A DNA stretch of 63,639 nucleotides, the filler included, from Octopus bimaculoides (lineage: Eukaryota): assembly GCF_001194135.2 (NCBI RefSeq). It is 5 parts of 4 records of this genome, joined end to end, with 100 filler letters (N's around TTAATTAATTAA, not from the genome) between each part and the next. Parts side by side here need not be neighbours in the genome. Positions count along the whole stretch, not along the records: positions 1 to 17,613 come from NC_069009.1; 4 more parts are not named here. One strand, written 5' to 3'. The notes under the pieces are model-generated. The model was not told where the DNA came from, did not search any database, and worked only from the letters and a program-made list of their open reading frames with translations. Below are positions 797-21,665 of the stretch, piece by piece. The first letter of the stretch is position 1, and each line of letters opens with the position of its first letter. The translations under genes and the position numbers were made by a program.

Positions 797-799
797 TAT

Positions 800-852
<53 letters not shown>

Positions 853-865
853 TTATCTATATCTA

Positions 866-901
<36 letters not shown>

Positions 902-910
902 CCTATCTAC

Positions 911-963
<53 letters not shown>

Positions 964-1077
964 AATCTATCTATCTATCTATCTATCTATTTATCTATCT
1001 ATCTGTCTATCTATCTATCTACCTATCTATCTACCTATCTACCTATCTATTTATCTATCTATTTGTATATATGTATA
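797..1077. repeat. (TATC)n microsatellite running into assembly gap 1078-1860
   Basis: Direct reading; source of the spurious YLSI/IYLS ORFs. Confidence 0.95.
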
Positions 1078-1860: not shown

Positions 1861-1918
<58 letters not shown>

Positions 1919-2506: not shown

Positions 2507-2900
2507 TTGTTGCTGCTGGCACTCCGTCGCTTTCGACGTCGAGGGTTCCAGTTGATCCGATCAACGGAACAGCCTGCTCGTGAAATTAACGTGCAAGTGG
2601 CTGAGCATTCCACAGACACGTGTACCCTTAACGTAGTTCTCGGGGATATTCAGCGTGACACAGAGTGTGACAAGGCTGGCCCCTTTGAATTACAGGCACA
2701 ACAGAAACAGGAAGAAAGAGTGAGAGAAAGTTGTGGTGGAAGAGTACAGCAGGGTTCGCCACCATCCCCTGCCGGGGCCCTGTGGTGCTTTTAGGTGTTT
2801 TCGCTCAATAAACACTCACAACGCCCGGTCTGGGAATCGAAACCGCGATCCTGTGACCGCGAGTCCGTTGCCCTAACCACTGTTGCCATTGCGTCTCCAC
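2507..2900 (-). mobile_element. SINE family A, full-length copy
   Basis: Reverse complement of the 23-409 element, from TTG tail to head ending ...CCATTGCGTCTCCAC. Confidence 0.9.
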
Positions 2901-3015
2901 AATATATAAATATTCTTCTCTTATATCTAGTCGTCTCATCTCACAGTTTCGATGTAGAAGAGAATAGTGTGGTTTTGCGTGTATATATGAATGTATATCT
3001 ACGCGTGGGTATGTT

Positions 3016-3047
<32 letters not shown>

Positions 3048-4118
3048 TGTATGTATGTATGTATGTATGTATGTATGTACGTATGTACGTACGTACGTAT
3101 GTACGCATGCATGCATGTGTGTATGAGTATAGTAGTACCTCAGTTTCGGAACAACTCTGATCGCAAATAAATCGTTCTGGGTAGCAAAATATAATTTCTT
3201 GAAATCAACGTTGCAAAAGAAAAGGGATGTAATAAGAGTGACCTTTCCTTACAACCATCATAGTTGCATGCGCAGTAACTGTGTTTGTCGTTCGTTCATA
3301 ATTTTTCTTTTTCATCAGCAATCAAAACAAGTTTGGAAATATTATTCTTTATGAAAACCATTTATGACGATATCTTTTATGAGATGTTTGCAAGGTTACG
3401 AATGACTAAAATTTGACAACAGAAATATTTTAAAAATCGCAAACACAAATAACGAAACACACTTAGTAGATGTGCGTAGACTGTTAATGGTAATAAGCGA
3501 AACTCCTAGTTTTTGAGTCACTCTCTAACTTTGATCACATAATATAAGATATAAAATAAGAAAGAAGACATATTTATCTTTTGTATTAGCGTAGAAATCA
3601 ATTAATTTCACTTTCTATTGATCTATTTTTTTAAAATTTAATTTAAATCCTTATTTAAGTCTTGCCGGCGCTTGAGATATATTTACTGCGGAATAATCAT
3701 TTGTACCTATCAAATATTATGTCGAAATAGCCCACAAAACTATCAGAAATTTTCAAATGTCATTTTTTCCTCGTTGGAGCCTTTCTTTTATCAAATAAAT
3801 CTTTTCATATGTGAGTGTGTAACATAATATTAACTTAGTGTTTGTCGTTGCTTCCCACTCCAATGTACACTTTTCTATATTTCATTGTCATCCATTCATG
3901 GCCTTCTCGCTTGTGCTGCTAATATGAAATTGCGACTTGATTTTTTTTATTCCACCTTTTTTTTTTTTTATTTAATATAATGTTTTTCTCTTTCTTTCAC
4001 CTGTCATAAAATAAATACTAACCACCAACACAACCTATATTTGATTGTTTATCTACTCAGACAGAGCTGACCTATGGCTAAACAACATTGTGAAGACACC
4101 GATGAAGCCTCTACAAGG

Positions 4119-4456
4119 TTGTTTGTTTGTTTGTTGTCACTCCGTCGCTTACGATGTCGAGGGTTCCAGTTTATCCGATCAACGGAACAGACTGCTCGTG
4201 AAATTAACATGCAAGCGGCTGAGCACTCCACAGACACGTGTACCCTTAACGTAGTTCTCGGGGGATATTCAGCGTGACACAGTGTGACAAGGCTGACCCT
4301 TTGAATTACAGGTACAACAGAAACAGGAAGTAAGAGTGAGAGAAAGTTGTGGTGAAAGAATACAGCAGGGTTCGCCACCATCCCCTGCCGGAGCCTCGTG
4401 GAACTTTAGGTGTTTTCGCTCAATAAACACTCACAACGCCCGGTCTAGGAATCGAA
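4119..4456 (-). mobile_element. SINE family A copy; head runs into gap 4457-5365
   Basis: Matches 2507-2900 up to the B box, then N run. Confidence 0.9.
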
Positions 4457-5365
4457 NNNNNNNNNNNNNNNNNNNNNNNNNNNNNNNNNNNNNNNNNNNN
4501 NNNNNNNNNNNNNNNNNNNNNNNNNNNNNNNNNNNNNNNNNNNNNNNNNNNNNNNNNNNNNNNNNNNNNNNNNNNNNNNNNNNNNNNNNNNNNNNNNNNN
4601 NNNNNNNNNNNNNNNNNNNNNNNNNNNNNNNNNNNNNNNNNNNNNNNNNNNNNNNNNNNNNNNNNNNNNNNNNNNNNNNNNNNNNNNNNNNNNNNNNNNN
4701 NNNNNNNNNNNNNNNNNNNNNNNNNNNNNNNNNNNNNNNNNNNNNNNNNNNNNNNNNNNNNNNNNNNNNNNNNNNNNNNNNNNNNNNNNNNNNNNNNNNN
4801 NNNNNNNNNNNNNNNNNNNNNNNNNNNNNNNNNNNNNNNNNNNNNNNNNNNNNNNNNNNNNNNNNNNNNNNNNNNNNNNNNNNNNNNNNNNNNNNNNNNN
4901 NNNNNNNNNNNNNNNNNNNNNNNNNNNNNNNNNNNNNNNNNNNNNNNNNNNNNNNNNNNNNNNNNNNNNNNNNNNNNNNNNNNNNNNNNNNNNNNNNNNN
5001 NNNNNNNNNNNNNNNNNNNNNNNNNNNNNNNNNNNNNNNNNNNNNNNNNNNNNNNNNNNNNNNNNNNNNNNNNNNNNNNNNNNNNNNNNNNNNNNNNNNN
5101 NNNNNNNNNNNNNNNNNNNNNNNNNNNNNNNNNNNNNNNNNNNNNNNNNNNNNNNNNNNNNNNNNNNNNNNNNNNNNNNNNNNNNNNNNNNNNNNNNNNN
5201 NNNNNNNNNNNNNNNNNNNNNNNNNNNNNNNNNNNNNNNNNNNNNNNNNNNNNNNNNNNNNNNNNNNNNNNNNNNNNNNNNNNNNNNNNNNNNNNNNNNN
5301 NNNNNNNNNNNNNNNNNNNNNNNNNNNNNNNNNNNNNNNNNNNNNNNNNNNNNNNNNNNNNNNNN

Positions 5366-5419
<54 letters not shown>

Positions 5420-5688
5420 TACGTATGTGTGTCTGTATATCGTTCCTTCTCTCTCTCACACACAGACGCACATACATGTGTGTGTGCATGCGTGTGTGTG
5501 TATCTGCATGTGTGTGTTTGTGTGTGTGTGTGTGTGTAACGATAGATAAACAAAAAGATAGATAAAGAAATTGATAGAAAGGAATAAGCTGTCTCTAGTT
5601 TAGATTCCCTTAAGTATTTTTCTGCGCATAACATATCTGTGACCATTTGACATTAAAGACACAGATGACACGCTCGATCGTGCGCATT

Positions 5689-5725
5689 TATATAAATTGC
5701 TGCTCCAAAGCTTCATTATTCAGTT
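5689..5725 (+). promoter_or_regulatory. Putative TATA box + initiator core promoter of the LRR gene
   Basis: TATATAAA at 5689-5696; TCAGTT Inr at 5720-5725 with its A at 5722, which puts TATAAA (5691) at -31; followed by a perfect GTAAGT donor at 5765. Confidence 0.55.
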
Positions 5726-5764
5726 GGGCATCGAAGACTTCGGTTTGGCTTCGTGGAAGAACAT
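5722..5764 (+). other. Putative non-coding exon 1 (5' UTR) of the LRR gene
   Basis: Runs from the predicted TSS to AACAT|GTAAGT; the coding exon at 8112 has a strong acceptor upstream of its ATG, so an upstream exon is expected. Confidence 0.5.
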
Positions 5765-6639
5765 GTAAGTACATTGCTTATACATGATCAAAAATTTTTT
5801 AAATTCTGTATTTAGTTTTAAATTGCAAAATTACATTTCGCATCTACTAAAAATATATTACGGAGATGTACTTGCATAGCAAGTGACCTGATCTGAGATC
5901 GTGTGCTGGAACGAAAACAATTGCAGCGTGGAAGGTGTTTATAAGCAATTTAAAATAACACACAAAAGATTCACTTCAACATTTAAATTTAATTTGTCAA
6001 AATATTTTCGTTGCTTTGAGACCGCGACCTGTTCACTGACAAAATTCTTTTCGATTTTTGGAATTATTACATACATGCAAAAATTTATGTTTCTTCAGTA
6101 AACCGAATCTTTTCCTTTTCTTCTACATCGTTTGTCATTTCATACTATTCTAGTTCGGAAACACTTGGAATTACTATACTGGAAAAATACTCCTCCAAAA
6201 TTCTGTTTTAATGTCTCGGTCATAACACTTTCAAGTCGAATAAGACTACAATTGTTTTGTATTCCATATTTCATATTTTGTATTCCATATTTCATATTTT
6301 GTATTCCATATTTCAGAACTTAAGTGATTTTTTTTCTGTAATTATATTTATATAGTTTACCGTTTTTAGTATTGGCTTTTTGTGTTTGTTTGTTAGTCGC
6401 TGTTTGTGTTTCTATGGAACTCAGTGCATTACTTTGCGATGGGGCTTATAAAGTTGCTTAGACGGCCGAACATGTATCGATTTCATTTCCCTTTTTTCCC
6501 TATTCCATTTCCCTTTTGTTACTTTCAATAATTCTAGGAGTTCCTTGTGGAATAGCCACTCTTACTTTACAAAGCATTGATTCTCTTTAGAATTCCAGCC
6601 GGCTTAAAAGCGTTTAGGCGACAGGGAAAACGCAAACTT

Positions 6640-7860
6640 ATTAATGGTGATGGCTTGGCTACTGACATAGTAGTCGCCTCAGATAATACCGTCCTCTGCT
6701 CTACTGAAGCGGGCCTGGCTGCCTATCGACGCTACTTTACACCTCAGACCCATTCTTTCACACAGCTTTCAGGCGCCCTAGAAAGACATCCTCACTTCTC
6801 TGGGGTCTTTCCCTGCCAGTAGCAGCGGACGTGCCAATGGTGTCAGACGCGGCTACCTCAAGTATTGTTGCATCCACTTATTGCCCGAGCCGGGCGCCAC
6901 CTGCTGAGGGCAACTACGATTCTCATTAACAGATTCATTTGCGGCATCCTGAGCCCTTATTCTCGAAGCATCTTCCTCTCATCCCGCCAAATCGTAGGCA
7001 ATATCTTCCGGAGGCTCGTGGCCAAAGTTATCTGCAGATTTATCACATCCAAACTAGGTGAGAAACACAACCCGGTGCAGCTGGGGTAGCTATCAGATGC
7101 GAGGATGAAGCGCATGGTATTAGACAGTTCTTCAATAACTATCCTCTTGAGCCGACATCGAGCGATTCCCAGCTTGGCATGAAAAATGTCTTCAATTATC
7201 TGAACCGCGACCACTTGCACCAGGCCTGCCTCAACTGCCTGTCTACCCGCTGCCTATCTGCTGTCTTGCCTTTCGTACGGGGCTCCGAGCTCGCTCCTCA
7301 CCTCAAATAAAGTCATACTGTTTTTGACTGGCATTCAACAAGGTGATCCATTGGATCCCTCCTATTCGCTTTCGGGGTGGACAGCATTGCTCGGTGCATC
7401 AAATCTCCCTTCGATGCCTGGTAGCTGGATGATGCAACGACAGTTTGAGAATTTCTGCCACGATCTCCGATCTGTGGTTCCCACTCTAGTGAAGATTGAT
7501 CTGGAGTTATACTTGTCGTACGTTCACTGCTTCTACAGGTACAGGTGACTTCGAAAGATGCGTTCAGTTCTCAGATACACCTGCCTGCCATTCGCTCTTC
7601 AATCAGATCTAAGCTTCGCCAGATTGACGAATAGACTGAATGTGATCGACGTCCACCCAGCATTGTTCCTGTCAAAGAACTGCCTCACCATGCCAAAGTA
7701 ATTGTATTCTCTACGCATTGCTCTTTGCTACAAATCCGTGTTTCTCTTCACATATCTCGACGCCTGTATCCAACGGGTCACTGAAGAGATATACAACATT
7801 TGGCTTGATGACACTGGATGGCGGCCTAAGCACTGGGCCATTGTGCCTCCACGTAGTAAC
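6640..7860 (+). mobile_element. Degenerate non-LTR retrotransposon RT region, CRE-clade-like (frameshifted fossil)
   Basis: Motifs across shifting frames: SFPASSSGRANGVR, IVGNIFRRLVAKVIC, PVQLGV, MKNVFNYLNRDHL, GIQQGDPLDP, AW*LDDAT (decayed YxDD) and HPALFLSKNCLTMPK; order matches CRE-type RT. Confidence 0.75.
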
Positions 7861-8131
7861 ACGAACACAGCGCGCTACCGTATAGAAGTGTGTATGAGCG
7901 GATCGAGACATTTAAAAATAACCGGACAAGCATGAAGCGCGAAAATGAGATACGATGCCCATCAGCCTCCACCACTGACATTCAACAAGCTCGTGAGAGG
8001 GATCTGATGGGGGTCTATCGATGAGGTGGTCATCTTTGTTCCTCGAAGAATCTGCAATATAAATTAGATAGTATCGGAGTGTCTGATATCTTGCATTTTC
8101 TTCTTTTACAGATTAATCTACGCATGAAAAT

Positions 8132-8322
8132 ATGTTCCGGCAAAATTTCCATGTCATGTTGACTTTTGTGTTGCTACTATACCTGAGGCTGTTTTTGGAG
8201 GCTCACGCTGTTTCTGACGTTTGCAACTTATGTAGATGTAATGATGATACTACGCGTATAACTTGTAGATATCTCAATTTGACTTCTGTTCCACAGAATA
8301 TTCCCCACGATGTTAAATATTT
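8132..8322 (+). CDS. LRR gene coding exon 1: signal peptide + LRRNT cap (MFRQNFHVMLTFVLLLYLRLFLEAHA-VSDVCNLCRCNDDTTRITCRYLNLTSVPQNIPHDVKYL)
   Basis: Acceptor TTTTACAG at 8111; hydrophobic signal ending AHA; LRRNT pattern CxxCxC...C....L..VP..IP; phase-2 donor TT|GTAAGT. Confidence 0.9.
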
Positions 8323-8518
8323 GTAAGTATTTGACAATTCTTTTTACATATTTTCCACATACAATGTTTTAAACTGTCATTGACTATGTGCTTGGCAAAT
8401 GCCTTATAGGGTTGATCTCACAGCTTTAAGCACCATATTATGTTGTAGTATAACAAGTCATTATGTTACTTGCTATGAAATCAAGTAGACTGTGTGTCTC
8501 AATACACATTGACTTATT

Positions 8519-8900
8519 TGTTGGCACTCCATCGGTTACGACGTCGAGGGTTCCAGTTGATCCGATCAACGGAACAGCCTGCTCGTGAAATTAACCTGCA
8601 AGTGGCTGAGCACTCCACAGACACGTGTACCCTTAACGTAGTTCTCGGGGATATTCAGCGTGACACAGTGTGACAAGGCTGACCCTTTGAATTACAGGCA
8701 CAACAGAAACAGGAAGTAAGAGTGAGAGAAAGTTGTGATGAAAGAGTACAGCAGGGTTCGCCACCATCCCCTGCCGGAGCCTCGTGGAACATTAGGTGTT
8801 TTCGCTCAATAAACACTCACAACACCCGGTCTGGGAATCGAAACCGCGATCCTATGACCGCGAGTCCGCTTCCCTAACCACTGGGCCATTGCGCCTCCAC
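8519..8900 (-). mobile_element. SINE family A, full-length intronic antisense copy
   Basis: Near-identical to 2507-2900. Confidence 0.9.
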
Positions 8901-8909
8901 AATATGAAC

Positions 8910-9095
8910 ATTGTTGTTGTTGGCACTCCGTCGCTTACGACGTCGAGGGTTCCAGTTGANNNNNNNNNNTTTGTTGGCACTCCATCGGTTACGACGTCGA
9001 GGGTTCCAGTTGATCCGATCAACGGAACAGCCTGCTCGTGAAATTAACGTGCAAGTGTCTGAGTACTCCACAGACACGCGTACCCTTAACGTAGT
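8910..9095 (-). mobile_element. Two tandem 3' fragments of SINE family A separated by a 10-N gap
   Basis: Tail sequence at 8910-8959 repeated at 8971-9095; may be partly an assembly overlap. Confidence 0.75.
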
Positions 9096-9645
9096 AAACA
9101 TTTCATTTTTTATTGCCTACTTCGGCTGGAAAACATTTTAGACTAATCAAAGCCAAACACGAAGTGCAATACAATTATATACACAGATACATATATACAT
9201 GTATAGACTCATGGGCATACACATGCGCAGTCATTTGTGCCTAACATACACCACAATATATCTAATCCTGTAAGTTGTAACTTTAACGTTGCACAGTTCA
9301 CACTTTCTTTAATCCTCTTCCTAATATATTTATACCAACAGCTTTATAAACAGTGAAGTTTCTATTATGACAACCCACATTCGTTTATATATTTTATTGA
9401 GCCTACTGTCTTATTTTACTGATATTACTATTATTATTTTGTATATTAATTTCTATATATTCCCTAATATCTTTTAATAATCATTATCATTATCATCATC
9501 ATTTTGACCCATCATTATCATCCTTTAATTTCACTTTTAGTTATTTTCTTCCCTTCCTGCATTTTATTAATTAGATATTATATTAAATATTTTATCCCAA
9601 ACCTCTTTTATTACTATTTCTTATCAATTCTCTTTTATCTTACAG

Positions 9646-9717
9646 AGATCTATCCTATAATAAAATATCGAATATTGGAAAAGAATCCTTCAAAAATCTT
9701 TCCAGTTTAGAGGAGTT
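9646..9717 (+). CDS. LRR exon 1 (DLSYNKISNIGKESFKNLSSLEEL)
   Basis: 72 bp, TTACAG acceptor, GTAAGT donor, phase 2/2, open frame, typical LxLxxNxIxxIxxxxFxxLxxL repeat. Confidence 0.92.
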
Positions 9718-9970
9718 GTAAGTTGAATCAGTCTCTCTAATAGAATCTCTTTCATTGTATATTTATAAATAATTTATGTTTACCCATATTTCTTCTCCGT
9801 CTCTTTGCCATTCTGTGTTTCACATTTTATCCCACTATATGTTTGTGAGTGTGTGCGTGAATGTGTGTAAAAATATGAGTGTTCTCTGCATGCAATTGAT
9901 TGTACATATTTAATATTTGATGATAAATCTCTTCTATATCATTTTTTATCAATTGTCTTTTATCTTACAG

Positions 9971-10042
9971 AGTACTATCCCGTAATGAGATCTCAGAAAT
10001 TGAACATGGCTGCTTTGATGATCTTCCCAAGTTACGCATTTT
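9971..10042 (+). CDS. LRR exon 2 (VLSRNEISEIEHGCFDDLPKLRIL)
   Basis: 72 bp, TTACAG/GTAAGT, phase 2/2, LRR consensus. Confidence 0.92.
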
Positions 10043-10329
10043 GTAAGTTCGAACAGTGTTACTGATCCTCTTTCTTTGTTTATTTCGAAATAATCAATGT
10101 TTTCCCATATTTCTTCTCTTCCGAATAGGAAAAAGAATAAAAATAAAGAAAAGGTGAATAAAGAAATTTAAAGGAATATACAGTTATACACACACACACA
10201 AAGGCCCATAAACACAGTTACACACATGATATTAAACGCTGATGTAGGCCTCAAACATTCATATTGTCACACACCTTCACGCACACACACTTCAGTCAGC
10301 AGCCTCGGGAGTTTCCGCTGCCTACGTAC

Positions 10330-10610
10330 TTACGTATTACACCAGAAATGACGCCCCAGATACAACAAATGTTACATCGGTAGCACAGTCCGACCGCTCC
10401 ACTTCTGAATGAAGGAGCGCCTCACTACCGACGCATCTTCCTTCCACAAACACCTCACCAAATACTTCAACACTGTGATAGATTCTTCCATATTGGCCTC
10501 GGAGAAAAACAATGGAAATCTTCATAACAAGGAAGCTATATTGGTCATCACACCGACAATTAATAGTCTAATAAACCACCATTTTACTGAAAATACAACA
10601 GGCCCAATGA
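10330..10610 (+). mobile_element. Penelope-like element GIY-YIG endonuclease fragment (fossil)
   Basis: One frame reads NKCYIGSTVRPLHF*MKERLTTDASSFHKHL...ILASEKNNGNLHNKEAILV...PTIN, matching the PLE YIGxTxRxLxxRxxEH and LxIKEAxxI motifs. Confidence 0.75.
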
Positions 10611-10646
10611 AAATCGCGGGACAACAGTAAAGAAATTAACTTACCA

Positions 10647-10707
<61 letters not shown>

Positions 10708-10717
10708 NNNNNNNNNN

Positions 10718-10764
<47 letters not shown>

Positions 10765-10929
10765 TGTGTGTGTGTGTGTATGTGTGTGTGTGTGTGTGTG
10801 TGTTATTTACATATCCACTTCTACTTTTTGTAATTCGTCATCTTCTTTATCTGTCTCATATTTATCGCGTTTCTTCTTTTTCGCATTTTCCTATTCCTGT
10901 TCTATTTTAGTACTTTACACTTCATCTTA

Positions 10930-11090
10930 ATCATCATCATCATCAGGATCACCATCACAATCATCTTCACTCATCATCATCATCATCAACATCATTGATA
11001 TTATTATCATGCATTATCATCACCAGCAGCATCATCACCCTCATTATCACAATCATCTTCACTCATCATCATCATCATCAACATCATTCA
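10930..11090. repeat. (CAT)n-rich low-complexity tract preceding an LRR exon unit
   Basis: Direct reading; homologous tracts at about 9480-9520 and 12795-13015. Confidence 0.85.
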
Positions 11091-11205
11091 TTCTTTCACT
11101 TTTAGTTGTTGTATTTCTCTTCTTGCTTCTAATTCATTAAGCATAACATTTATTAGTTTATCCCATGTCTATATTATTTCTTTACAATTCTCTTTTATCT
11201 TACAG

Positions 11206-11277
11206 AGATTTATCCCATAATCAGATCTCAAATACTGAACAAGGATACTTCGGAAAACTTACCAGTTTACAAACTCT
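11206..11277 (+). CDS. LRR exon 3 (DLSHNQISNTEQGYFGKLTSLQTL)
   Basis: 72 bp, TTACAG/GTAAGT, phase 2/2; LRR consensus with some atypical residues. Confidence 0.85.
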
Positions 11278-11307
11278 GTAAGTTGGATCAGGCTTGTTGA
11301 TACTCTT

Positions 11308-11640
11308 AAAAACACATAAAAAGCTGGCTGAGAAATTTAATGAAATATTAGCAGAGCCAGTGACAATGTCTGAATGGCTCATGGAAGGGAAAACTATTCT
11401 AATTCCCAAATCCACTGAAACGGCAAATCTACAAAATTACAGACCGATAACTTGTTTCCCTACAATTTACAGAGCCTTTACTGCAATAATATCGCAGAGA
11501 ATGGGTAAACATCTGGTAGGAAACTTGCTTCCAGAGGAGCAATCAGGATGCTGCATGAGCTCATACGGCTGTAAATATCAGCTACTGATCAATAAAGCTA
11601 TAACTGAAGACATCCGTAGAAAGAAGAAATATCTATGAGT
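11308..11640 (+). mobile_element. Non-LTR retrotransposon RT fragment, R4/Dong-like
   Basis: EWLMEGKTILIPK...NYRPITCFPTIYRAFTAII...LLPEEQSGC..SSYGCKYQLLINKAI is the RT domain 0-2 region of REL-type LINEs. Confidence 0.85.
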
Positions 11641-12365
11641 CCTGACCGAAGTGTCTGTTTTCAATCTTTCCGCCGCATTTTCACTATAGTCTGTTCGTCG
11701 TTTCTTCTAGGTTCTTGTCCATATGAAGGAATGCAAAATGTTGTCATTTAGTCGGACCACGGGGAAATTTCGTGGTAAATTGCAATGACTCAGCGTCTGA
11801 AGATAGACTCCAAATCAGTCTTACTCAGACGCAAAATACTGACTTTCAACTAATCGAAACTGATCAGAGCTCCATTCATGCCGCATTCTTTACTAATCCC
11901 TTCGATGATGTATCTTGTGAGTAGGAAGTTATAGCGGAGAGATCTGTTTGATAAGACATATGCTTGAGCCTCAACTACCAGAGCATCGACGACAAGTGCC
12001 AACCCGTTCTGTTACCCGTTACAGTAGACATATGCCAAGGATTATCAAATATATCCGGCATATGAAGATAAATCGCATGAAGCAGCTCATCCTGCCCTGG
12101 AGGCCTCTACCTGGTGCAGCCCGTCATCGATTCTCCAATTTCTGTCAGATACTATCAGCCTGTTGCAAAACTGCACATCTTATATCAAGAGTCACGTCAG
12201 GCCATTGAATTAGACAATTAATTAGACATTGAATTAGACAATTAAACACTCGTCATTACCGATTCATCGAAGACCAAATTGTAATTTCCTGTAATTAGTT
12301 AATTAAACATGATATTTGATATTTCATCCCAGGTCTCTTCTATTTCTTATCCTTTTATATTACAG

Positions 12366-12437
12366 AAATCTACGATATAATGTCATCTCGCAAATTAAGC
12401 AAAGGTCCTTCGAGAACCTTCCTAGTTTACGCAGCAT
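12366..12437 (+). CDS. LRR exon 4 (NLRYNVISQIKQRSFENLPSLRSI)
   Basis: 72 bp, TTACAG/GTAAGT, phase 2/2, LRR consensus. Confidence 0.92.
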
Positions 12438-12550
12438 GTAAGTTAGATCAGACTTGTTGATACTATTTCCTTGACTGTATATTTCTAAATAATTAAACAA
12501 TTCAAATAAATGAATAAAAATGGACAACACGAGGATATGTATAAAAAAAT

Positions 12551-12618
12551 GTATTAGCTTGACGCTCGGTGAAAGGAGAGAGTTTGACGTTTCGAGCAGA
12601 GCACTTCGTCAAAAAGAG
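12551..12618 (-). ncRNA. Degenerate type I hammerhead-like motif in a repeat shared with 55694-55762
   Basis: Minus strand: cuuu UUGACGA a GUGC ucu GCUC GAAA CGU...GCG UC^AAG; C3 is U and stem II has one mismatch. Confidence 0.5.
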
Positions 12619-12696
12619 AAAGAGAAAAGTCCAAAGAAGGAAACGTATCCATGAATTTTTATGAGTATGTATATACTGAGAGACAATTAAGTGATC

Positions 12697-12741
12697 CTTG
12701 CTGATGATGCTACGGAAATAGCCGAAACTGATCAGTCAGTA
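12697..12741 (+). ncRNA. Minimal (dimer-type) hammerhead-like motif
   Basis: CUGAUGA u GCUA cggaaa UAGC c GAAA, then palindrome ACUGAUCAGU and GUC^; stem I does not pair in this copy. Confidence 0.55.
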
Positions 12742-13120
12742 TAGAGAATTTTCGAATGGTGTTTGTACTTCATTCTTCTTTCATTTTAGTAATCAGCATC
12801 ATCATCATCATGATCCCCATCACCATCATCACCACCACAATCATCATCATCATCAACGTCATCTTTATCGCTTATCTTCGTCAGTAGCAGCCTGATTTAC
12901 AGCAACACCACCATCTCCACCAACAGCATTACACTCAGTATTATCACCATCATCGTTATCATAATCTTCTTCATCCCACATCGCCATTAGCAACTTCACT
13001 CATCATCATCATCAATTCTTTCACTTCTACTTTTTCTTCTCTTCCTGCATCTAATTCATTAGACATAATATTTATTATTTCACCTGTGCTATTTCTTATC
13101 AATTCTCTTTTATATTACAG

Positions 13121-13192
13121 AAGTCTACAAAGTAATAATATCTCGAAGATTGAACAAGCGTCCTTTGAAGACCTTCCTAGTTTACGCAGCAT
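13121..13192 (+). CDS. LRR exon 5 (SLQSNNISKIEQASFEDLPSLRSI)
   Basis: 72 bp, TTACAG/GTAAGT, phase 2/2, LRR consensus. Confidence 0.92.
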
Positions 13193-13608
13193 GTAAGTTG
13201 TATCGCACTTGCTGATACTATTTCTTTGACTGTATATTTCTAAATAATTAATGTTTCCCCATATTTCTTCTATGTTTCTTTGCCACAACAAACTCACATT
13301 TTCTTCTTATGATATATACGTGTGAGAGCGTGCGTGAATGTGTGTAAGAATATGAGTGTTCGTGAACTACAGTGTTTGATGTTATCTTCCAAGAAGATAT
13401 GAGGCTGCAGGATGTATATATCTTATTAGATTATTTATTTGAAGATATTCGTAATAGGTTTAAGGTGGATAGGTCCAGTTAGAACAACGGAAACAGATAC
13501 ACATGCACACGTATACTTTTACTCTTTAGTCTTTTACTTGTTTCAATCATTTGACTGCGACCATGCTGGACACACACACCGAACATATGCACACACATGT
13601 ATACATGA

Positions 13609-13654
<46 letters not shown>

Positions 13655-14301
13655 NNNNNNNNNNNNNNNNNNNNNNNNNNNNNNNNNNNNNNNNNNNNNN
13701 NNNNNNNNNNNNNNNNNNNNNNNNNNNNNNNNNNNNNNNNNNNNNNNNNNNNNNNNNNNNNNNNNNNNNNNNNNNNNNNNNNNNNNNNNNNNNNNNNNNN
13801 NNNNNNNNNNNNNNNNNNNNNNNNNNNNNNNNNNNNNNNNNNNNNNNNNNNNNNNNNNNNNNNNNNNNNNNNNNNNNNNNNNNNNNNNNNNNNNNNNNNN
13901 NNNNNNNNNNNNNNNNNNNNNNNNNNNNNNNNNNNNNNNNNNNNNNNNNNNNNNNNNNNNNNNNNNNNNNNNNNNNNNNNNNNNNNNNNNNNNNNNNNNN
14001 NNNNNNNNNNNNNNNNNNNNNNNNNNNNNNNNNNNNNNNNNNNNNNNNNNNNNNNNNNNNNNNNNNNNNNNNNNNNNNNNNNNNNNNNNNNNNNNNNNNN
14101 NNNNNNNNNNNNNNNNNNNNNNNNNNNNNNNNNNNNNNNNNNNNNNNNNNNNNNNNNNNNNNNNNNNNNNNNNNNNNNNNNNNNNNNNNNNNNNNNNNNN
14201 NNNNNNNNNNNNNNNNNNNNNNNNNNNNNNNNNNNNNNNNNNNNNNNNNNNNNNNNNNNNNNNNNNNNNNNNNNNNNNNNNNNNNNNNNNNNNNNNNNNN
14301 N

Positions 14302-14360
<59 letters not shown>

Positions 14361-14777
14361 CGCCTCTATAACTCACATTCCCTCCCAATATGTGTGTGAG
14401 AGAGTGTTCGTGAACGTGTGCAAGAATATGAGTGTTTGAAGGCTACATCGTTGTTTGAAATTATGTGAGTGTGTGTGCATACGTATATATGTGTTTTTGT
14501 GTGTGTATATATATAAATATATATTCCATTAATCATCTTCATTCTTTTTTCCTCTTGACCACAGACCATGTTTTTTACTCTTCCAAATTGGTCAAACCTA
14601 TTCATGTGCAAAATACACCTCCAGGAGATCCATACAGAGAAGTAAACAACTGCACAGTAAACATGGGCGTTTGTTCTGTCAGCGTTGACTAAACAGAAAT
14701 TTAGAAAGTATTTGACAAGACAAAACAGATTTATTGACTTTTACGTATTTTAACTTATCTTTGTTTCTTTCTTTCAG

Positions 14778-14849
14778 AATTTTTAGTGTAAACCGAATAC
14801 AAAAGTATGAGGATGGCGCTTTCTTATTCCTTCCCAGTATAAAGAAGAT
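14778..14849 (+). CDS. LRR exon 6 (IFSVNRIQKYEDGAFLFLPSIKK[I/M])
   Basis: 72 bp, TTTCTTTCTTTCAG acceptor, GTATGT donor, phase 2/2, xNxIxxxxxGAFxxLPxI pattern. Confidence 0.85.
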
Positions 14850-15154
14850 GTATGTACAACAAAGCTCTTTATTTATTTGAAAACCGAAACACTTTGTAAA
14901 AGTAATATCATAATGAGAGATCAACAAATTCGCAATTGTTTAATACAGTTGACAATAAATAACGAGGAGATGTTTTCAGTTTTAATAAGTCAAAATGATT
15001 ATTTCCAAGTATGATGTTTAATCATTGTTAAGTCCCCGTTTACATAGCACGTGGTTTGTTTGGTCTAATTTCATCCCTGTTCATAAATACACGTAATAAA
15101 CAGGAGTTAGTTCAGTGGCCAACATACATATGTGTGCATGCACGTGTACATATA

Positions 15155-15548
15155 TACGAGGGTAGGTTGAAAAGGTCAAAGGCCGACCACGATGCAAAGG
15201 TCAAACTTAACCAAAAGTTCTTTTTTATTTTTCGACATAGTCTCCTCTATGGTCCATACACGTCTTCCATCGGTGTTGCAGTGTTGCAGTGCTTGGATTC
15301 CCGTGGTATAGAAGCTCCTATCCTGACATTCACAAAGTCCTCGACAGCAGATATGACCTTATCATTGGTCTGATACTGCTTCCAAGCCAAGTGGAGCTTT
15401 TTTTTTTAATTTAGGGAATAGAAAATAGTCAGATGGTATCAAATCAGGCGAATGTGGAAGGTGATCAACCAGTTCAAAGCCACAGTCGCGCACAACAGCC
15501 ATTGCAACCACAGACTTGCGCGCAGGAGCATTGTCCTCGTGAAGCAGT
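15155..15548 (-). mobile_element. Mariner transposon 3' fragment (fossil)
   Basis: Minus strand reads LLHEDNAPARK...DHLPHSPDLIPSDYFLFPKLK...FYTTGIQAL...RWKTCMDHRGDYVEK*, followed by a TIR-like end TACGAGGGTAGGTTGAAAAG. Confidence 0.85.
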
Positions 15549-16440
15549 TTCCACTAGAAACCATTTCACTTTTTGTTGTTATTAACACCTGGAAAGAAAG
15601 AACATGAATATCGTGATTTCTATACACTTTTGCTGAAATTATATAATCCTTGTTTCTTGTCATATCCAGCAGGAGAAACTCCTATTCATCTGAAATAGCA
15701 TTCCGTTATAAAGTTCTCTATAATNNNNNNNNNNNNNNNNNNNNNNNNNNNNNNNNNNNNNNNNNNNNNNNNNNNNNNNNNNNNNNNNNNNNNNNNNNNN
15801 NNNNNNNNNNNNNNNNNNNNNNNNNNNNNNNNNNNNNNNNNNNNNNNNNNNNNNNNNNNNNNNNNNNNNNNNNNNNNNNNNNNNNNNNNNNNNNNNNNNN
15901 NNNNNNNNNNNNNNNNNNNNNNNNNNNNNNNNNNNNNNNNNNNNNNNNNNNNNNNNNNNNNNNNNNNNNNNNNNNNNNNNNNNNNNNNNNNNNNNNNNNN
16001 NNNNNNNNNNNNNNNNNNNNNNNNNNNNNNNNNNNNNNNNNNNNNNNNNNNNNNNNNNNNNNNNNNNNNNNNNNNNNNNNNNNNNNNNNNNNNNNNNNNN
16101 NNNNNNNNNNNNNNNNNNNNNNNNNNNNNNNNNNNNNNNNNNNNNNNNNNNNNNNNNNNNNNNNNNNNNNNNNNNNNNNNNNNNNNNNNNNNNNNNNNNN
16201 NNNNNNNNNNNNNNNNNNNNNNNNNNNNNNNNNNNNNNNNNNNNNNNNNNNNNNNNNNNNNNNNNNNNNNNNNNNNNNNNNNNNNNNNNNNNNNNNNNNN
16301 NNNNNNNNNNNNNNNNNNNNNNNNNNNNNNNNNNNNNNNNNNNNNNNNNNNNNNNNNNNNNNNNNNNNNNNNNNNNNNNNNNNNNNNNNNNNNNNNNNNN
16401 NNNNNNNNNNNNNNNNNNNNNNNNNNNNNNNNNNNNNNNN

Positions 16441-16750
16441 TAATGTGAAAGTGGCTGAGCACTCCACAGACACGCGTACCCTTAACGTAGTTCTCGGGGA
16501 GATTCAGCGTGACACAGAGCGTGACAAGGCTGGCCTTTTGAAATACAGGTAAACAGAAACAGGAAGAAAGAGCGAGAGAAAGTTGTGGTGGAAGAGTACA
16601 GCAGGGTTGGCCACCATCCCCTGCCGGAGCCTCGTGGAGCTTTAGGTGTTTTCGCTCAATAAACACTCACAACGCCCGGTCTGGGAATCGAAACCGCGAT
16701 CCTATGACCGCGAGTTCGCTGCCCTAACCACTGGGTCATTGCGCCTCCAC
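16441..16750 (-). mobile_element. SINE family A copy; tail lost in gap 15725-16440
   Basis: Matches 2507-2900. Confidence 0.9.
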
Positions 16751-16811
16751 GTTATTGTTATGCATTACGCTAGTTAGTTCCTAAATACGGATATTATCTT
16801 CTTTTCTGTAG

Positions 16812-16903
16812 ATTATTCGTTATTTCAAAAGAATTTGCAGTGTCAAACATGTTCGGGGTTAATGTGCGATGATTCAGAAGTGACAAACTGTACAGGAGCA
16901 GAG
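16812..16903 (+). CDS. Three-finger (Ly6/uPAR-like) domain, exon a (xYSLFQKNLQCQTCSGLMCDDSEVTNCTGAE)
   Basis: CTTTTCTGTAG acceptor, GAG|GTAAAC donor, phase 1/0, open frame, LxCxxC start typical of LU domains. Confidence 0.82.
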
Positions 16904-17131
16904 GTAAACTAAAATCTTACTTTCTTCCCTTCTGTTAAAATATATCCAAAGCCAGTTTAACCTAACAGCTTGTACCATGCTTTCGCTAATTATCTTATGT
17001 GCCTGTATAATGGTGCTGGTGCTGGTGCTGCTGTTGCTGCTGCTGTTGCTGCTGCTGTTGCTGCTGCTGTTGCTGCTGCTGTTGCTGGTGATGGTAGTAA
17101 TAGTATATGACTTTTATATTTATCCCTGCAG

Positions 17132-17312
17132 CCTGTATGCCAAATTATGTTATCAAGGAATCGTGTTATGCCGAAGATTGAAAAATCCTGCAGCACACAC
17201 AGTAGGTGTCTCGAAGCCATGGGAAAGACCCTTGCATGCAATCAATGGACAAATGACGCTTCTTGTGTTCGTTGCTGCACCGGAAACTTATGTAACAAGG
17301 ATGACGTCATTG
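17132..17312 (+). CDS. Three-finger domain, exon b (PVCQIMLSRNRVMPKIEKSCSTHSRCLEAMGKTLACNQWTNDASCVRCCTGNLCNKDDVI)
   Basis: CCCTGCAG acceptor, G|GTAAGC donor, phase 0/1, in frame with exon a; KSC and CxxCCxxxxCN motifs. Confidence 0.88.
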
Positions 17313-17429
17313 GTAAGCGCGTTCTTTGTTCTCTCATTTCTTTATTAAATTACACCTGATTTATCATGCAAGAATTATTCATAAGAACATTGTATAATTG
17401 CTGATACACGAAAAAATATTTTATTGTAT

Positions 17430-17589
17430 GCAGGAGTGACTGTGTGGTAAGTAGCTTGCTTACCAACCACATGGTTCTGGGTTCAGTGTCTTCTACATGG
17501 TTCTGGGCAAGTGTCTTCTACTATAGCCTCGGGCCGACCAAAGCCTTGTGAGTGGATTTGGTAGACGGAAACTGAAAGAAGCTCATCGT
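17430..17589 (+). mobile_element. tRNA-derived SINE family C, 5' half (CORE-like GGGCAAGTGTCTTC), followed by (TA)n and a gap
   Basis: Reverse complement of 51605-51767; GGGTTCAG B-box-like segment. Confidence 0.8.
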
Positions 17590-17713
17590 ATATATATATA
17601 TATATATATATATNNNNNNNNNNNNNNNNNNNNNNNNNNNNNNNNNNNNNNNNNNNNTTAATTAATTAANNNNNNNNNNNNNNNNNNNNNNNNNNNNNNN
17701 NNNNNNNNNNNNN

Positions 17714-18095
17714 CTAGAAAGTTGCCTTCCTCAGAAGTTTCCAGGAACTTCGGAATTTCACACGAAGTTACCGACTCACCCTCCTTGGAACTTTCCAGGA
17801 ATCGTTCCCCCTACCCCTGCCTCGAAACTTTCCAGGAATTCGTTTCTCGGAACTTTCCGGGACGTGGCCCATTCTCCTTCTTCCTGCTGTTCGGAACTAT
17901 CCAAGAAATTGCCTCTCCTCGGAACTTTCCAGGATGTCCTCCCTCCCCTCGTAACTTTCCAGGATGCTGCCTCCCTTGGAACTTCACAGGATGTTGTTAC
18001 ACCCCTCCTGTCCTCCTTGGAACTTTCAAAGAATTTTCCCCCTCTTCAGAACTTTGCAGGAAGTTTCCCATTCTCTCTCCTCGGAACTTTCCAAT
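17714..18095. repeat. Minisatellite, about 11-12 degenerate units with core GGAACTTTCCAGGA
   Basis: Core repeated at irregular 25-50 bp spacing with C/T-rich spacers. Confidence 0.85.
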
Positions 18096-19026
18096 AAGAT
18101 GGATGGATGGTTAGATACATGGAAGGATGAATAGATAGATGGATGAATGGATGGATAGACAGAGAGACAGTCGGACAGACGGACAGATAGATAGACAGAT
18201 AGATAAACTGGTATAAAGACACGCACAATCTAATTTTACAGATTATCAAAAGTAAGAGGGGATGAACAAATGCCTGTTGTAGAATTTGTTTAATTCAACG
18301 GAATTCCTTGTATTACTTCGTGAATTACAAATCCCTAACATCCTCAGGCGAACTCGTGAAGTTTGCCTGATGAACACAGTGATGTGACACACTTTGTCTC
18401 TCTCTTTCTCACTCTCTCTCTGTATAGCTACTTCTGCGTCGTCTTCTTTCTCATTCTCCCTCTCTCGCTCATTTCATCGCATCCCTTCTTCGCTTTCATG
18501 TTACTAAGTTATTAATCAAATGAAATTTCATATTAGTTAACAAAATGTTTATTTTAAAACACACCAAAACTATGATGTGTGTATATATATACATACATAT
18601 ATATATATATACATACATAGATACATAGATANNNNNNNNNNNNNNNNNNNNNNNNNNNNNNNNNNNNNNNNNNNNNNNNNNNNNNNNNNNNNNNNNNNNN
18701 NNNNNNNNNNNNNNNNNNNNNNNNNNNNNNNNNNNNNNNNNNNNNNNNNNNNNNNNNNNNNNNNNNNNNNNNNNNNNNNNNNNNNNNNNNNNNNNNNNNN
18801 NNNNNNNNNNNNNNNNNNNNNNNNNNNNNNNNNNNNNNNNNNNNNNNNNNNNNNNNNNNNNNNNNNNNNNNNNNNNNNNNNNNNNNNNNNNNNNNNNNNN
18901 NNNNNNNNNNNNNNNNNNNNNNNNNNNNNNNNNNNNNNNNNNNNNNNNNNNNNNNNNNNNNNNNNNNNNNNNNNNNNNNNNNNNNNNNNNNNNNNNNNNN
19001 NNNNNNNNNNNNNNNNNNNNNNNNNN

Positions 19027-19066
<40 letters not shown>

Positions 19067-19374
19067 TCATGTACGTATGCATGTATGCACATATGAACAT
19101 GTACATACATATACTCACACATACACACGCACAGCCTCACAGACAATATAATTATTATTGAAGAATACGAAAAATTTTACCGCACTCATTTGGGGTAATA
19201 TCGCGGGAATAATTCCAAACTTTAATCCAATTAGCTATTCTTTCTTCTGAAACACCTTAACTCAATTATGAACTCTGATTGGTAAAATCACACAAGCGTA
19301 TGCACACTCGAATATACACTCACATGAATACACACATGAATATATTACCAAGCTGTAGACGAATATACACATAT

Positions 19375-19589
19375 TCTTTTCTACTCTAGGCAGAAGGCCC
19401 GAAATTTTTGTGGAAGTGGCCTATCGATTAGATCGACACCAGTACGTAACTGGTACTTAATTTATCGACCCCGAGAGGATGAAAGGCAAAGTCGACTTCG
19501 TAGAAATTTGAACTCAGAACGTAAAGATAGACGAAATACCGCGAAGAATTTCGCCCGGCGTGCTATGATTTTTACCAGCTCACCGCCTT
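19375..19589 (-). mobile_element. tRNA-derived SINE family B
   Basis: Minus strand begins GGCGGTGAGCTGG, B box GAGTTCAAATT; homologous to 45262-45455, 47538-47690, 53650-53856 and 57315-57530. Confidence 0.85.
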
Positions 19590-21665
19590 GCACGCATCAA
19601 TATATAACCAGGATATGCAGGAATTCGGGCGTCATATGACGTCTAAGAGGCTACATTCATGCTCCTGCAATTGATGTGCTCTTACGGGTATGTTGAAGGT
19701 GTTTCGCTACATGCAGAGCCGTGAGTTCGCGTAACTCAGACTGCATTATACGACACACATACTTTTTTTTTTATTTCCTTCCTTTCCCCTCCCAAAAAGA
19801 AAAGCTCTACATTGTATTTGTCCCATCTTCGTTGAGCCCTGTGTGGCTAATAAAAGAAATGTATCTATCTATCTATCTATCTATCTATCTAATCTATGTA
19901 TCCACTGAAAAATTCGCCATTACGTAAGTTCTTCTAATGGGATTTGGTCAACCACAGAAACCATAGAATATATCAGCTGTCAATTTTCCATCATCACTTG
20001 TAGTCCGTGATGGTCCAAAATAATTAACATATACATATTTTCTGCTGTTTGCTTCCCATTTGTTTTAAAAAAGAAATTAGAGTGTGATTTCAAGGAGTGA
20101 GATTTGGCGTTACAGCTTCGAATAGGTCCATTTTGCACTTAGTCGATCTGATGTCTAAAAGAGCGTAAAGAAATAGATAACCTATGAATGATATGTCAAG
20201 TGCTGAGACAGGACGTTCATTGATTATCGACACCATCTTTGGTGACACGATTGAGAAAAAAGCAAAACAATGAAACAAATTGCATTGCAATGGCTTCTAT
20301 TGTGACTCAGATTATGGAGGAACGTTTCGCCTTTAAAAATGAAATATTGTTTAATAATGCAGGATTTTTAATTTTTACGCTATCAAGCTTTTGTTCTTTA
20401 ATTATTCAACAGTAAGCTGAGAAATGTCCCATTCCGGCTTAAATGATTTAATCTATGCAAAGGATGTTGGCGAAAAAGAAATTATCGACTGTTCGGCAAG
20501 ATGTTCAACACTCTCGTCAAGACATTTTTGTTTAATCAAACTTTAATTCATCAAAAGCCATGTTAAGGTCTTATATCTTGAGTCGAGATTGCAATCCAAT
20601 CTCTATGACAAACAAGTAAAAAGAAATAATTCAACGTCTGAACGGTAGACCTTCCAGCTTGCGATTTCCTAAAAGTTTCACTTATATTTATGTACAAAAA
20701 AAGATTGAATGAAGAATTAATGGCTACCCCACTCAGAAACGATGTATAATTAATATAATTGAGTCACACAAAAAAATAAACACTAGAATTTACTACTTTT
20801 ACAATTGAAATCAGATATTCACTGTGTTTTTGAAATCTATCAATTATTTTACCTGCATTGAAAATCTTTGCTACAGAAACACTAAATCCTTTTAAAAGGA
20901 ACTTTTCTGTGTATAACCTATCGGCCATTCTTTACATTACTTTTTACCTAAATATTTTTGTAATGAACTGGACAAATAAGTGGTGTTAGTCGCCATCGTT
21001 AGTTCTTTCGGGTCCTTCAACAATCATACACTCACAACATAAGAATTCAACTGCAGCTTATCAAACCCCAACTTGTGCCCAAGTAACACTTCAATCCAGA
21101 TAGCATTACCCCTTCAGACCACTTGTCTTCTGATCATCCGCTCACACCTTGCGGCAACTTCTGTTCAGTTTCTACGTTGATAACATTTATGTCATGGAGT
21201 TAACATACGATACAATTATAAATACTGGCATAGATTTTTGGTCAAAACAAACCTGCAATACACAAGCTTCCTGTCCATCTCAGAAAGATCGATAGTAGAA
21301 GATTTCATATATTTCCTATCATATAAAGAATAGATAATTTATACAAACACACACAAACAAGCACACTAAGAAAGAAAGAAGAGAAGGAGAGAGAAACAAA
21401 GTAGGTACATGTATATGTGTGTGCTAGAGTAGGTGTGTACGTGTATATATCATCTGGTGTTTTCAATCATTCAATCTTTATGTAGATATGAATGTGTATG
21501 TGTCTGTCTAAATTTATATATATATAAATAAATACAGGCATTATGTGTGTATGTGTCAGTGTGTATATCGATAAAGATGTGCATCTATCATTATAGATGT
21601 TTGAATATATGTGTGTAGGTATAAAAATATGTACGCATGTATACAAATATAAACATATGCATATA

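Follow-up and report, generated by a model that had tools for sequence, protein, structure and literature searches.

A leucine-rich repeat and three-finger domain locus of Octopus bimaculoides is probably the 5′ third of an adhesion GPCR gene split by assembly gaps

A signal peptide, six leucine-rich repeat exons and two cysteine-rich exons lie on one strand

The window analyzed here is a 63,639-nucleotide (nt) stretch of Octopus bimaculoides DNA (assembly GCF_001194135.2), about 18% of it N, and our subject is a gene in its first piece, positions 1-17613, whose exons encode leucine-rich repeats (LRRs) and a 12-cysteine domain of the Ly6/uPAR (LU) kind. This piece equals the locus L003 (CM046629.1:877360-904601) base for base at an offset of 1869 and contains six gaps, four of which fall within the LRR-LU span, each in an intron. 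The + strand carries a signal-peptide/LRRNT exon, six LRR exons and two LU exons, confirming what the original prediction, made from the sequence of the window, had observed:

Exon 1, 8132..8322, + strand: Met, signal peptide MFRQNFHVMLTFVLLLYLRLFLEAHA followed by V, LRRNT and the start of the first LRR; phase 2 out
LRR exon 1, 9646..9717, + strand: 72 nt, phase 2/2
LRR exon 2, 9971..10042, + strand: 72 nt, phase 2/2
LRR exon 3, 11206..11277, + strand: 72 nt, phase 2/2
LRR exon 4, 12366..12437, + strand: 72 nt, phase 2/2; near-duplicate of exon 5
LRR exon 5, 13121..13192, + strand: 72 nt, phase 2/2; near-duplicate of exon 4
LRR exon 6 (last), 14778..14849, + strand: IFSVNRIQKYEDGAFLFLPSIKK; 72 nt, phase 2/2
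LU exon 1, 16812..16903, + strand: cysteines 1-4; phase 1 in, phase 0 out
LU exon 2, 17132..17312, + strand: cysteines 5-12, ending CCTGNLCN; phase 1 out at G/gtaagc

Exon 1 encodes a hydrophobic signal ending AHA/V and LRRNT cysteines spaced C-x2-C-x-C-x10-C, and leaves in phase 2 through a TT/gtaagt donor. It is 100% identical to the annotated model P0001, and its first 31 residues are the same as in the paralogue P0014/P0040. We scanned both strands for units of 63-87 nt between AG and GT that carry an LRR signature and recovered exactly six, all on the + strand, each 72 nt long in phase 2/2 and bounded by strong ttacag/gtaagt-type sites. The spliced LRR product of 207 amino acids (aa) matched Pfam LRR_8 with E=8e-45 and was 100% identical to P0001, an NCBI model of 251 aa named 'IGFALS'. 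The last LRR exon, which P0016 and P0014 match in tblastn, encodes the conserved repeat found directly before the LRRCT in every paralogue (paralogue motif YEDGAFLFLP(S/N)I).

Spliced in frame, the LU exons yield exactly the pattern that had been predicted, C-x2-C-x4-C-x7-C-x6-C-x16-C-x5-C-x9-C-x8-C-x2-CC-x4-CN, with 12 cysteines, and the module enters and exits in phase 1, also as predicted. Its N-terminal L-x-C-x-x-C motif reads NLQCQTC and its C-terminal CC-x4-CN motif reads CCTGNLCN. In an alignment of 18 homologues, ten cysteines (those of both motifs included) are invariant, and the two others and the final Asn are conserved in at least 90%. Because about 20 octopus homologues share this framework, the pattern is not a product of chance. 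The region of LU exon 1 with its intron flanks is 81% identical at the nucleotide level to positions 14094-14265 of an O. sinensis homologous locus (L001; CM016866.1:71482406-71509976, reversed), and the donor G/GTAAGCG after LU exon 2 is kept in O. sinensis. A (GCT/GTT)n run occupies 17008-17090 in the intron between the LU exons, with a similar run in the same O. sinensis intron (L001 ~17255-17330); a blastn match over LU exon 2 and its flanks reaches through the run to L001.

The LU domain recurs inside an octopus family of adhesion GPCRs

We searched 1.84 billion representatives exhaustively by phmmer, using the LU sequence of 90 aa, and obtained 28 matches, about 22 of them true relatives. 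P0033, P0037 and P0039 proved on inspection to be unrelated repeat proteins, and P0034 and P0038 show the same weak pattern and were judged by that pattern alone. The named relatives all come from O. bimaculoides, O. vulgaris or O. sinensis (P0032 and the fragment P0036 are not among the named). When the LU alignment was used for a word-indexed profile search, the yield was limited to three short octopus models.

In about 20 octopus protein clusters, the LU domain is internal and follows LRRs and an LRRCT, which is the architecture for which the original prediction proposed a proteome search, and the longer members continue to HormR, GAIN/GPS and a secretin-type seven-transmembrane (7TM) domain. 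The LU domain lies at residues 272-359 of 1283 aa, 228-314 of 1155, 466-556 of 844 and 312-401 of 456 in homologues. From the sequences and Pfam matches, the family plan reads signal peptide, LRRNT, LRRs, four-cysteine LRRCT (N(K/P)xxCxCHLPA...C...QC), 12-cysteine LU, a linker of ~100 aa, HormR, GAIN/GPS and 7tm_2, with an LRR count that differs among paralogues. GPS and 7tm_2 matches in paralogues had E-values of 1e-13 down to 1e-41, and the cleavage motif (CSCNHLTSFA/T, CECIHLTNFA) keeps C-x-C-x-HLTSF. P0014/P0040 ('decorin-like'), on the same scaffold as the window gene, has LRRs, LRRCT and LU in one model; no more than 90 kb from the window gene are P0040 and additional 7TM models. P0032 is a complete open reading frame (ORF) of 1155 aa with signal peptide, LRRs, LRRCT, LU, HormR, GPS and 7TM. 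Its ORF is unbroken on a 4.2-kb Logan contig (run SRR21372857, another sample) and was recovered three times; therefore, the whole architecture exists in one ORF, most simply an mRNA. The best solved relatives of its GAIN-7TM half are ADGRG6, G2, G4 and L3.

This family is already known in outline. Ritschard et al. 2019 (PMC6408891) described an octopus-specific adhesion G-protein-coupled receptor (GPCR) expansion, 'group 3', and list A0A0L8FLR8, A0A0L8HDZ7 and A0A0L8GYR2 as class B group 3. According to that paper, group 3 members have a GPS motif and/or an adhesion-type 7TM, with LRRs in 5 of 22 sequences and a Death domain in one. The genes are co-localised and show expression or enrichment in axial nerve cord, suckers and skin, and positive-selection signatures are given for some co-localized group 3 receptors. 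The three listed proteins sit in LU-bearing clusters homologous to the window locus: the window LU is 35-56% identical to P0028, P0030 and P0035, the clusters holding A0A0L8GYR2, A0A0L8FLR8 and A0A0L8HDZ7. By sequence homology and its co-localised cluster, we assign the window gene to group 3, and with it the lineage-specific receptor of the original prediction has a place in an octopus-specific expansion. The window locus is unrecognizable as a group 3 member in the current annotation because gaps split the gene. In P0030/P0045 (O. bimaculoides, other chromosome), the 7TM is followed by a C-terminal Death domain (Pfam E=3e-6), a feature that is unusual for a GPCR and agrees with the single Death-domain sequence reported by Ritschard et al.

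LRR exons 4 and 5 of the window are identical at 56 of 72 positions, and their downstream introns at 53 of 60, i.e., the introns are more alike than the exons, which indicates a recent tandem duplication of an exon-plus-intron unit. Since the near-duplication includes the intron, unequal crossing-over of such units is a plausible source of the variation in LRR count. The varying LRR number together with the exon 4/5 duplicate points to a diversifying recognition family.

An LRRCT exon is expected inside the 716-N gap

The last LRR exon exits in phase 2 and LU exon 1 enters in phase 1, so the gene cannot be read straight across the intervening gap in frame. Direct splicing of the two exons was rejected, as it produces a frameshift and stops.

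Gap 15725-16440, + strand: 716 N, inferred site of the LRRCT exon

The original prediction had postulated a hidden linker exon to bring the frame from phase 2 to phase 1. Precisely this property, phase 2 in and phase 1 out, belongs to the LRRCT of O. sinensis L001 and of the locus of an O. bimaculoides paralogue (L005), where it is encoded by a single exon of 170 nt (L001 9979-10148; L005 20262-20431). Window positions 15548-15724 align to L001 9800-9973, in the intron upstream of the LRRCT exon, and end at a conserved TATAAT. In both L001 and L005, five bases (ttcag or tgcag) separate TATAAT from the LRRCT exon; since the readable sequence of the window stops at this TATAAT, the gap opens 5 nt before the expected exon. 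We infer that an LRRCT exon of ~170 nt, phase 2 in and phase 1 out, is hidden in the gap, starting near 15730.

Consistent with this placement, P0016 lacks a counterpart between the last LRR and LU only for its residues 66-117. The spacing also fits. In L005, ~1.06 kb separate the last LRR exon from the LRRCT exon and ~0.48 kb the LRRCT exon from LU exon 1; in the window, 876 nt lead from the last LRR exon to the gap, and the gap is followed by a 310-nt short interspersed element (SINE) and then by the conserved intron end. The LRRCT motif N(P/K)xxCxC...C...C is found in the paralogues, L001 and L005, which gives the family the combination of LRRs and LRRCT seen in ADGRA receptors.

Downstream exons continue into an adhesion GPCR that the annotation divides

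Mapping the O. vulgaris paralogue P0016 onto L003 gave a colinear arrangement, in which the missing segments fall only in two gaps, the 716-N gap and a second one directly beyond the window piece. The features past LU exon 2, and the last exon of P0001, are:

Second gap, 17614-19655 (window-equivalent): 2042 N; P0016 residues 210-247 missing here
Linker exon, 19922-20083 (window-equivalent), same strand as the LRR and LU exons: phase 1-1
HormR exons, 20316-20468 and 21736-21864 (window-equivalent), same strand: phase 1-2
GAIN exons (four), 22695-24888 (window-equivalent), same strand: colinear with paralogues in L003
P0001 terminal exon, 15241..15373, + strand: LLYGPYTSS...SLV*; acceptor in repeat-like sequence

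The downstream exons are open and their phases are consistent; for example, LIGE+A spliced to TG-FCNEDSS gives GEMFCNE, compared with DEMVCDE in a paralogue. The next NCBI model, of 698 aa, has GPS (PF01825) and then 7tm_2 (PF00002), the GAIN/GPS-then-7TM order of an adhesion GPCR. Its first position, L003 21866, falls within the linker exon, whose end is at 21952, and lies just past the 2042-N gap. The AlphaFold2 (AF2) model of the linker is beta-alpha-beta-beta-alpha-beta with a predicted local distance difference test (pLDDT) score of 81, and Foldseek returned generic ferredoxin-like matches only. A SEA identity of the LU-HormR linker was not established, as there was no SEA match and the folds matched were the generic ones.

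P0014/P0040 in one model, the colinear paralogue mapping and the gap-edge alignment together place LRRs and LU in one protein, as originally predicted. The LRR and LU exons very probably belong to one gene and form the outer part of an adhesion GPCR, and the window is likely to hold the 5′ third of one such O. bimaculoides gene, split in the annotation by gaps. The LRR-LU receptor of the original prediction is thereby supported and extended: the pairing very probably holds and makes up only the N-terminal third of an adhesion GPCR, whose family had already been published. The product would comprise a signal peptide, LRRNT, at least 6-7 LRRs, LRRCT, a 12-cysteine LU domain, a ferredoxin-like linker of ~100 aa, HormR, GAIN/GPS and a secretin-type 7TM.

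The state of the annotation would follow from this arrangement: the LRR-only P0001, the unannotated LU exons and the N-truncated 698-aa GPS+7TM model very probably arise because assembly gaps cut one gene. The sequence of the P0001 terminal exon is absent from all paralogues compared, and this exon is probably an artefactual 3′ end imposed by the gap. Antisense to it, at 15179-15553 (- strand), lie open frames (HLPHSPDLIPSDYFLFPKLK) with no Pfam match that appear to resemble the C-terminus of a mariner/Tc1 transposase. The short models P0012 ('LYPD1-like'), P0052 and P0053 start with MMCGCHLP or MMCACHLP inside the LRRCT exon, whose acceptor is in phase 2, and judged by these starts they are truncated models.

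Similar fragmentation is seen at L005 (CM046629.1:784117-818307, reverse), where P0040 lies 70-90 kb from the window gene, head-to-head with it on the same 12-Mb scaffold. There, a separate GPS+7TM model of 568 aa overlaps P0040, another 7TM gene ends ahead of it, and the locus is full of N gaps. Because N gaps pervade this locus too, the split-model artefact probably recurs across the cluster. At L001, the LRRCT, LU, HormR and GAIN exons are present; no linker exon was detected there. The L001 LU has Gly in place of Cys3 and thus 11 cysteines, as has P0022, and its LU-to-HormR splice would still be phase 1-1 (compare model P0019). A single 200-nt match of 88% identity joins window 5854-6047 to L001 8790-8988 and may be either a synteny anchor or a repeat.

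Alternatives to a single gap-split gene

Several points weigh against one continuous receptor gene. The joins over the 716-N and 2042-N gaps are deduced from paralogues and the O. sinensis homologue, and the current annotation has separate genes for the pieces. The GPS and 7TM of this locus are known only from precomputed Pfam matches, beyond the sequence read. In the 10 kb upstream of the L001 LRRCT exon, no LRR exon was found, and loop 2 of the window LU has diverged further than that of most paralogues. Shortened isoforms with LRRs or LRR-LU, such as the 'decorin-like' X1-X3 models of the paralogue, may also be real.

The alternative that survives best, and one we still consider unlikely, is that the window holds a decaying or partial paralogue, a pseudogene whose lesions are hidden by the gaps. 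The family is a young tandem cluster in which some annotated members are fragments, and an 11-cysteine member is present in O. sinensis. In the window copy, loop 2 of the LU domain and an NNT glycosylation site deviate from the consensus, and the LU is 59% identical to its O. sinensis homologue as against 73-81% for the flanking intron. However, all readable exons (exon 1, six LRR, two LU, the linker, two HormR and four GAIN exons) are open, their splice sites are good and their phases compatible, and the window LU keeps all 12 cysteines. The positive selection reported for some co-localized family receptors (PMC6408891) could account for fast LU divergence.

We regard as somewhat less credible still that three separate genes are present, namely a small secreted LRR protein, a Ly6/LYPD1-like gene (the alternative that the original prediction had itself named) and an adhesion GPCR starting downstream. 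The database does hold models in that form (P0001 with 251 aa, the O. sinensis 'LYPD1-like' P0012 with 151 aa and the 698-aa GPS+7TM model), and, taken alone, the last LRR exon does not fit LU exon 1 in phase. Yet LU exon 1 is entered in phase 1, without a Met or signal peptide, and in the homologous loci it is entered from the LRRCT exon. Reading through past CN yields a weakly hydrophobic tail of 17 aa (counted from the final Asn, 21 residues average 0.23 on the Kyte-Doolittle scale), and in O. sinensis a tail of only 9-10 aa, hence no glycosylphosphatidylinositol (GPI) signal; the donor G/GTAAGCG is conserved instead. P0012, P0052 and P0053, with their Met-Met starts, begin inside an exon entered in phase 2, as truncated models would, the 698-aa model begins inside the linker exon right after the 2042-N gap, and the last exon of P0001 lies in repeat-like sequence resembling a transposon relic. 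A separate Ly6 gene is thus disfavored, and we continue with the single gap-split adhesion GPCR gene.

A further candidate came from the N-terminal part, which aligns to LGR4/5 with E=1e-51 to 1e-54; the arrangement of one LRR per 72-nt exon resembles that of LGR genes. An LGR-type receptor, with a class A 7TM, was rejected, as the downstream 7TM is of the secretin/adhesion type (7tm_2) and is preceded by a GPS.

The cysteine-rich module resembles Lynx2

Pfam supported the two halves of the original prediction unevenly: LRR_8 matched strongly, UPAR_LY6 gave no match to the window LU domain, and Activin_recp, its best match, stayed below threshold over the full profile (E=0.002-0.0035; 18.7-19.4 bits versus a gathering threshold of 20.9). 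Toxin_TOLIP reached 11.3-11.8 bits against a cutoff of 21.2, likewise below the gathering threshold. Among the 18 family members, seven have a weak Activin_recp match and four a weak UPAR_LY6_2 match. A profile built from the 18 homologues matched human LYPD1/Lynx2 (6zss) over the full length with E=7.7e-4 and all 12 cysteines aligned; SLURP1, LYPD6 and Lynx1 matched more weakly, and ACVR1 only with E=0.5. The AF2 model of the LU domain (pLDDT 75.7, predicted template modelling score 0.65) is mostly beta and takes the three-finger form. Its best Foldseek match is LYPD1 (TM 0.64/0.66, probability 1.00; E-values were modest, 1e-2 at best), and nearly all of the listed matches are toxins of the three-finger type, Ly6 proteins or ectodomains of TGF-beta receptors; the predicted structure thus agrees with the three-finger domain of the original prediction.

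The LYPD1 profile match with its 12 aligned cysteines, together with LYPD1 as the best fold match, argues that the module is a genuine Lynx2-type LU/three-finger domain, with six predicted disulfides. By the same comparison, the 12-cysteine count is a known LU subtype, present in LYPD1/Lynx2, and not a novel one. The likeness to LYPD1, of the Ly6/uPAR family, extends to the 12-cysteine framework, the LxCxxC start and the CCx4CN end. The two differ in that LYPD1, a lone domain with a GPI anchor, has a signal peptide of its own, whereas the octopus LU sits internally, as a phase 1-1 module, in a multidomain receptor. That the module is a TGF-beta/activin-receptor-type ectodomain, as Activin_recp being the best Pfam match, its weak matches in 7 of 18 members and the presence of ACVR1 and TGFBR2 ectodomains among the weak sequence and fold matches might suggest, is very improbable, because the scores of the window copy are all under the gathering threshold, the LYPD1 profile match has a ~600-fold better E-value than ACVR1 with LYPD1 also the best fold match, and the LU is followed by HormR-GAIN-7TM and not by a transmembrane segment or kinase. 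The three-finger fold is common to both, and the question is one of subfamily, not of fold.

Relation to known adhesion GPCRs and a possible mode of action

Two known kinds of adhesion GPCR resemble parts of the octopus receptor. The vertebrate ADGRA2 and ADGRA3 (GPR124/GPR125) share with it a signal peptide, LRRs, LRRCT and, later, HormR-GAIN-7TM. The ADGRA domain order is LRRs, LRRCT, Ig and HormR-GAIN-7TM. One family member bears the NCBI name 'adhesion GPCR A3', and a weak GAIN_ADGRA3 Pfam match is recorded for an O. sinensis neighbor. However, ADGRA has an Ig domain where the octopus family has the LU and ferredoxin-like domains, and the octopus LRR number is larger and variable; no Ig family match was found between LRRCT and HormR in six paralogues. 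When the GAIN/7TM part was compared with solved structures, no ADGRA chain appeared among the best 60 chains listed. Among solved relatives, ADGRG6 (GPR126) scored best with the GAIN-7TM half (E=9e-67), and several members are named 'G6-like' by NCBI. ADGRG6 has an alpha/beta (SEA) domain before HormR. It starts with CUB and pentraxin domains, whereas the octopus family starts with LRR-LRRCT-LU and its linker is without a SEA match.

We know of no place for an internal Ly6/Lynx-type three-finger domain in the standard adhesion GPCR domain list. Two papers on starfish LyAr2/LyAp2 (PMC9410279, Paramonov et al. 2022; PMC11595613, Mar Drugs 2024) place a Lynx2-like LU inside predicted adhesion GPCRs and are the only published mention of an LU-adhesion-GPCR architecture that we found. 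The starfish proteins are from an echinoderm and the papers mention no LRRs; their likeness to the octopus family is one of described architecture. In the main text of PMC6408891, Ly6 is unmentioned, and neither there nor in the consulted part of its InterProScan table did we find a description of LRRCT, LU, linker or HormR. We found no description in the literature of an LU domain in cephalopod adhesion GPCRs; the family is published, and in the papers found its LU domain is so far undescribed.

The exon anatomy, family architecture, colinearity and LU fold class are shown by the present analysis, and a mode of action can be proposed from what is known of adhesion GPCRs in general. On that basis, the LRR arc would form a ligand-binding head with the LU domain. 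The GAIN domain would be autoproteolysed at the GPS, where the paralogues keep HLT/HLTSF. Ligand binding to the N-terminal fragment, or a pull on it, might then displace the fragment and expose a tethered agonist to the 7TM, leading to G-protein signaling. The reported enrichment in suckers, skin and arm nerve cord and the reported positive selection of some members make the LU and variable LRR head a candidate for ligand-finding. Lynx proteins bind nicotinic receptors, and octopus chemotactile receptors derive from nicotinic receptors. A highly speculative idea, to which we give little credence, is that the LU domain is the functional novelty of the family, acting as a membrane-tethered three-finger module that might bind Cys-loop receptors in cis or in trans and so couple chemotactile or cholinergic sensing to adhesion-GPCR signaling. 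If so, the variable LRR arc would add a second specificity.

For the annotation, the model 'IGFALS', the unannotated LU exons and the headless 7TM very probably form one receptor, and the same artefact would affect the 'decorin-like', 'chaoptin' and 'LYPD1-like' models of the family, including the short ones that begin with MMCGCHLP. The octopus-specific adhesion GPCR expansion thereby gains a fuller ectodomain plan of LRR, LRRCT, LU, an alpha/beta domain, HormR and GAIN.

Repeats and other gaps in the window

The remaining three gaps within the LRR-LU span are:

Gap 8960-8969: 10 N, inside a SINE copy; intronic
Gap 10708-10717: 10 N, inside a (TG)n run; intronic
Gap 13655-14301: 647 N, in the intron of LRR exons 5/6, with a (TA)n run on one side and a (CT)n run on the other

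As LRR number differs among paralogues, the 647-N gap may contain extra 72-nt LRR exons, which would be frame-neutral.

A repeat of ~190 nt has at least five copies in the window (23-215, 2706-2901, 4322-4456, 8708-8901 and 16558-16750), each ~83-86% identical to positions 30719-30909 of the O. sinensis locus L002, and its translations recur in several frames. It looks SINE-like; Rfam returned nothing at gathering thresholds, including no tRNA-like match for this repeat. In the intron of LRR exons 3/4, 11282-11635 (+ strand) has a 118-aa open frame with a sub-threshold RVT_1 match (E=3e-4), and copies 78% identical occur twice in L002; it is a retroelement fragment. This weak RVT_1 match is the single one behind transposon labels for intronic ORFs, the other ORFs having no Pfam match. 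Upstream of exon 1, 6500-7900 has a GC content of 0.49, against ~0.35 elsewhere, and long degenerate open frames on both strands with no Pfam match; one frame has an RT-like GIQQGDPLDPS motif, and the region is probably an old retroelement. At 8917-9013, ~43 nt before the 10-N gap at 8960-8969 recur after it with 2-3 mismatches. These intronic near-duplicates are probably unmerged overlapping contig ends, which would leave the gene model unaffected.

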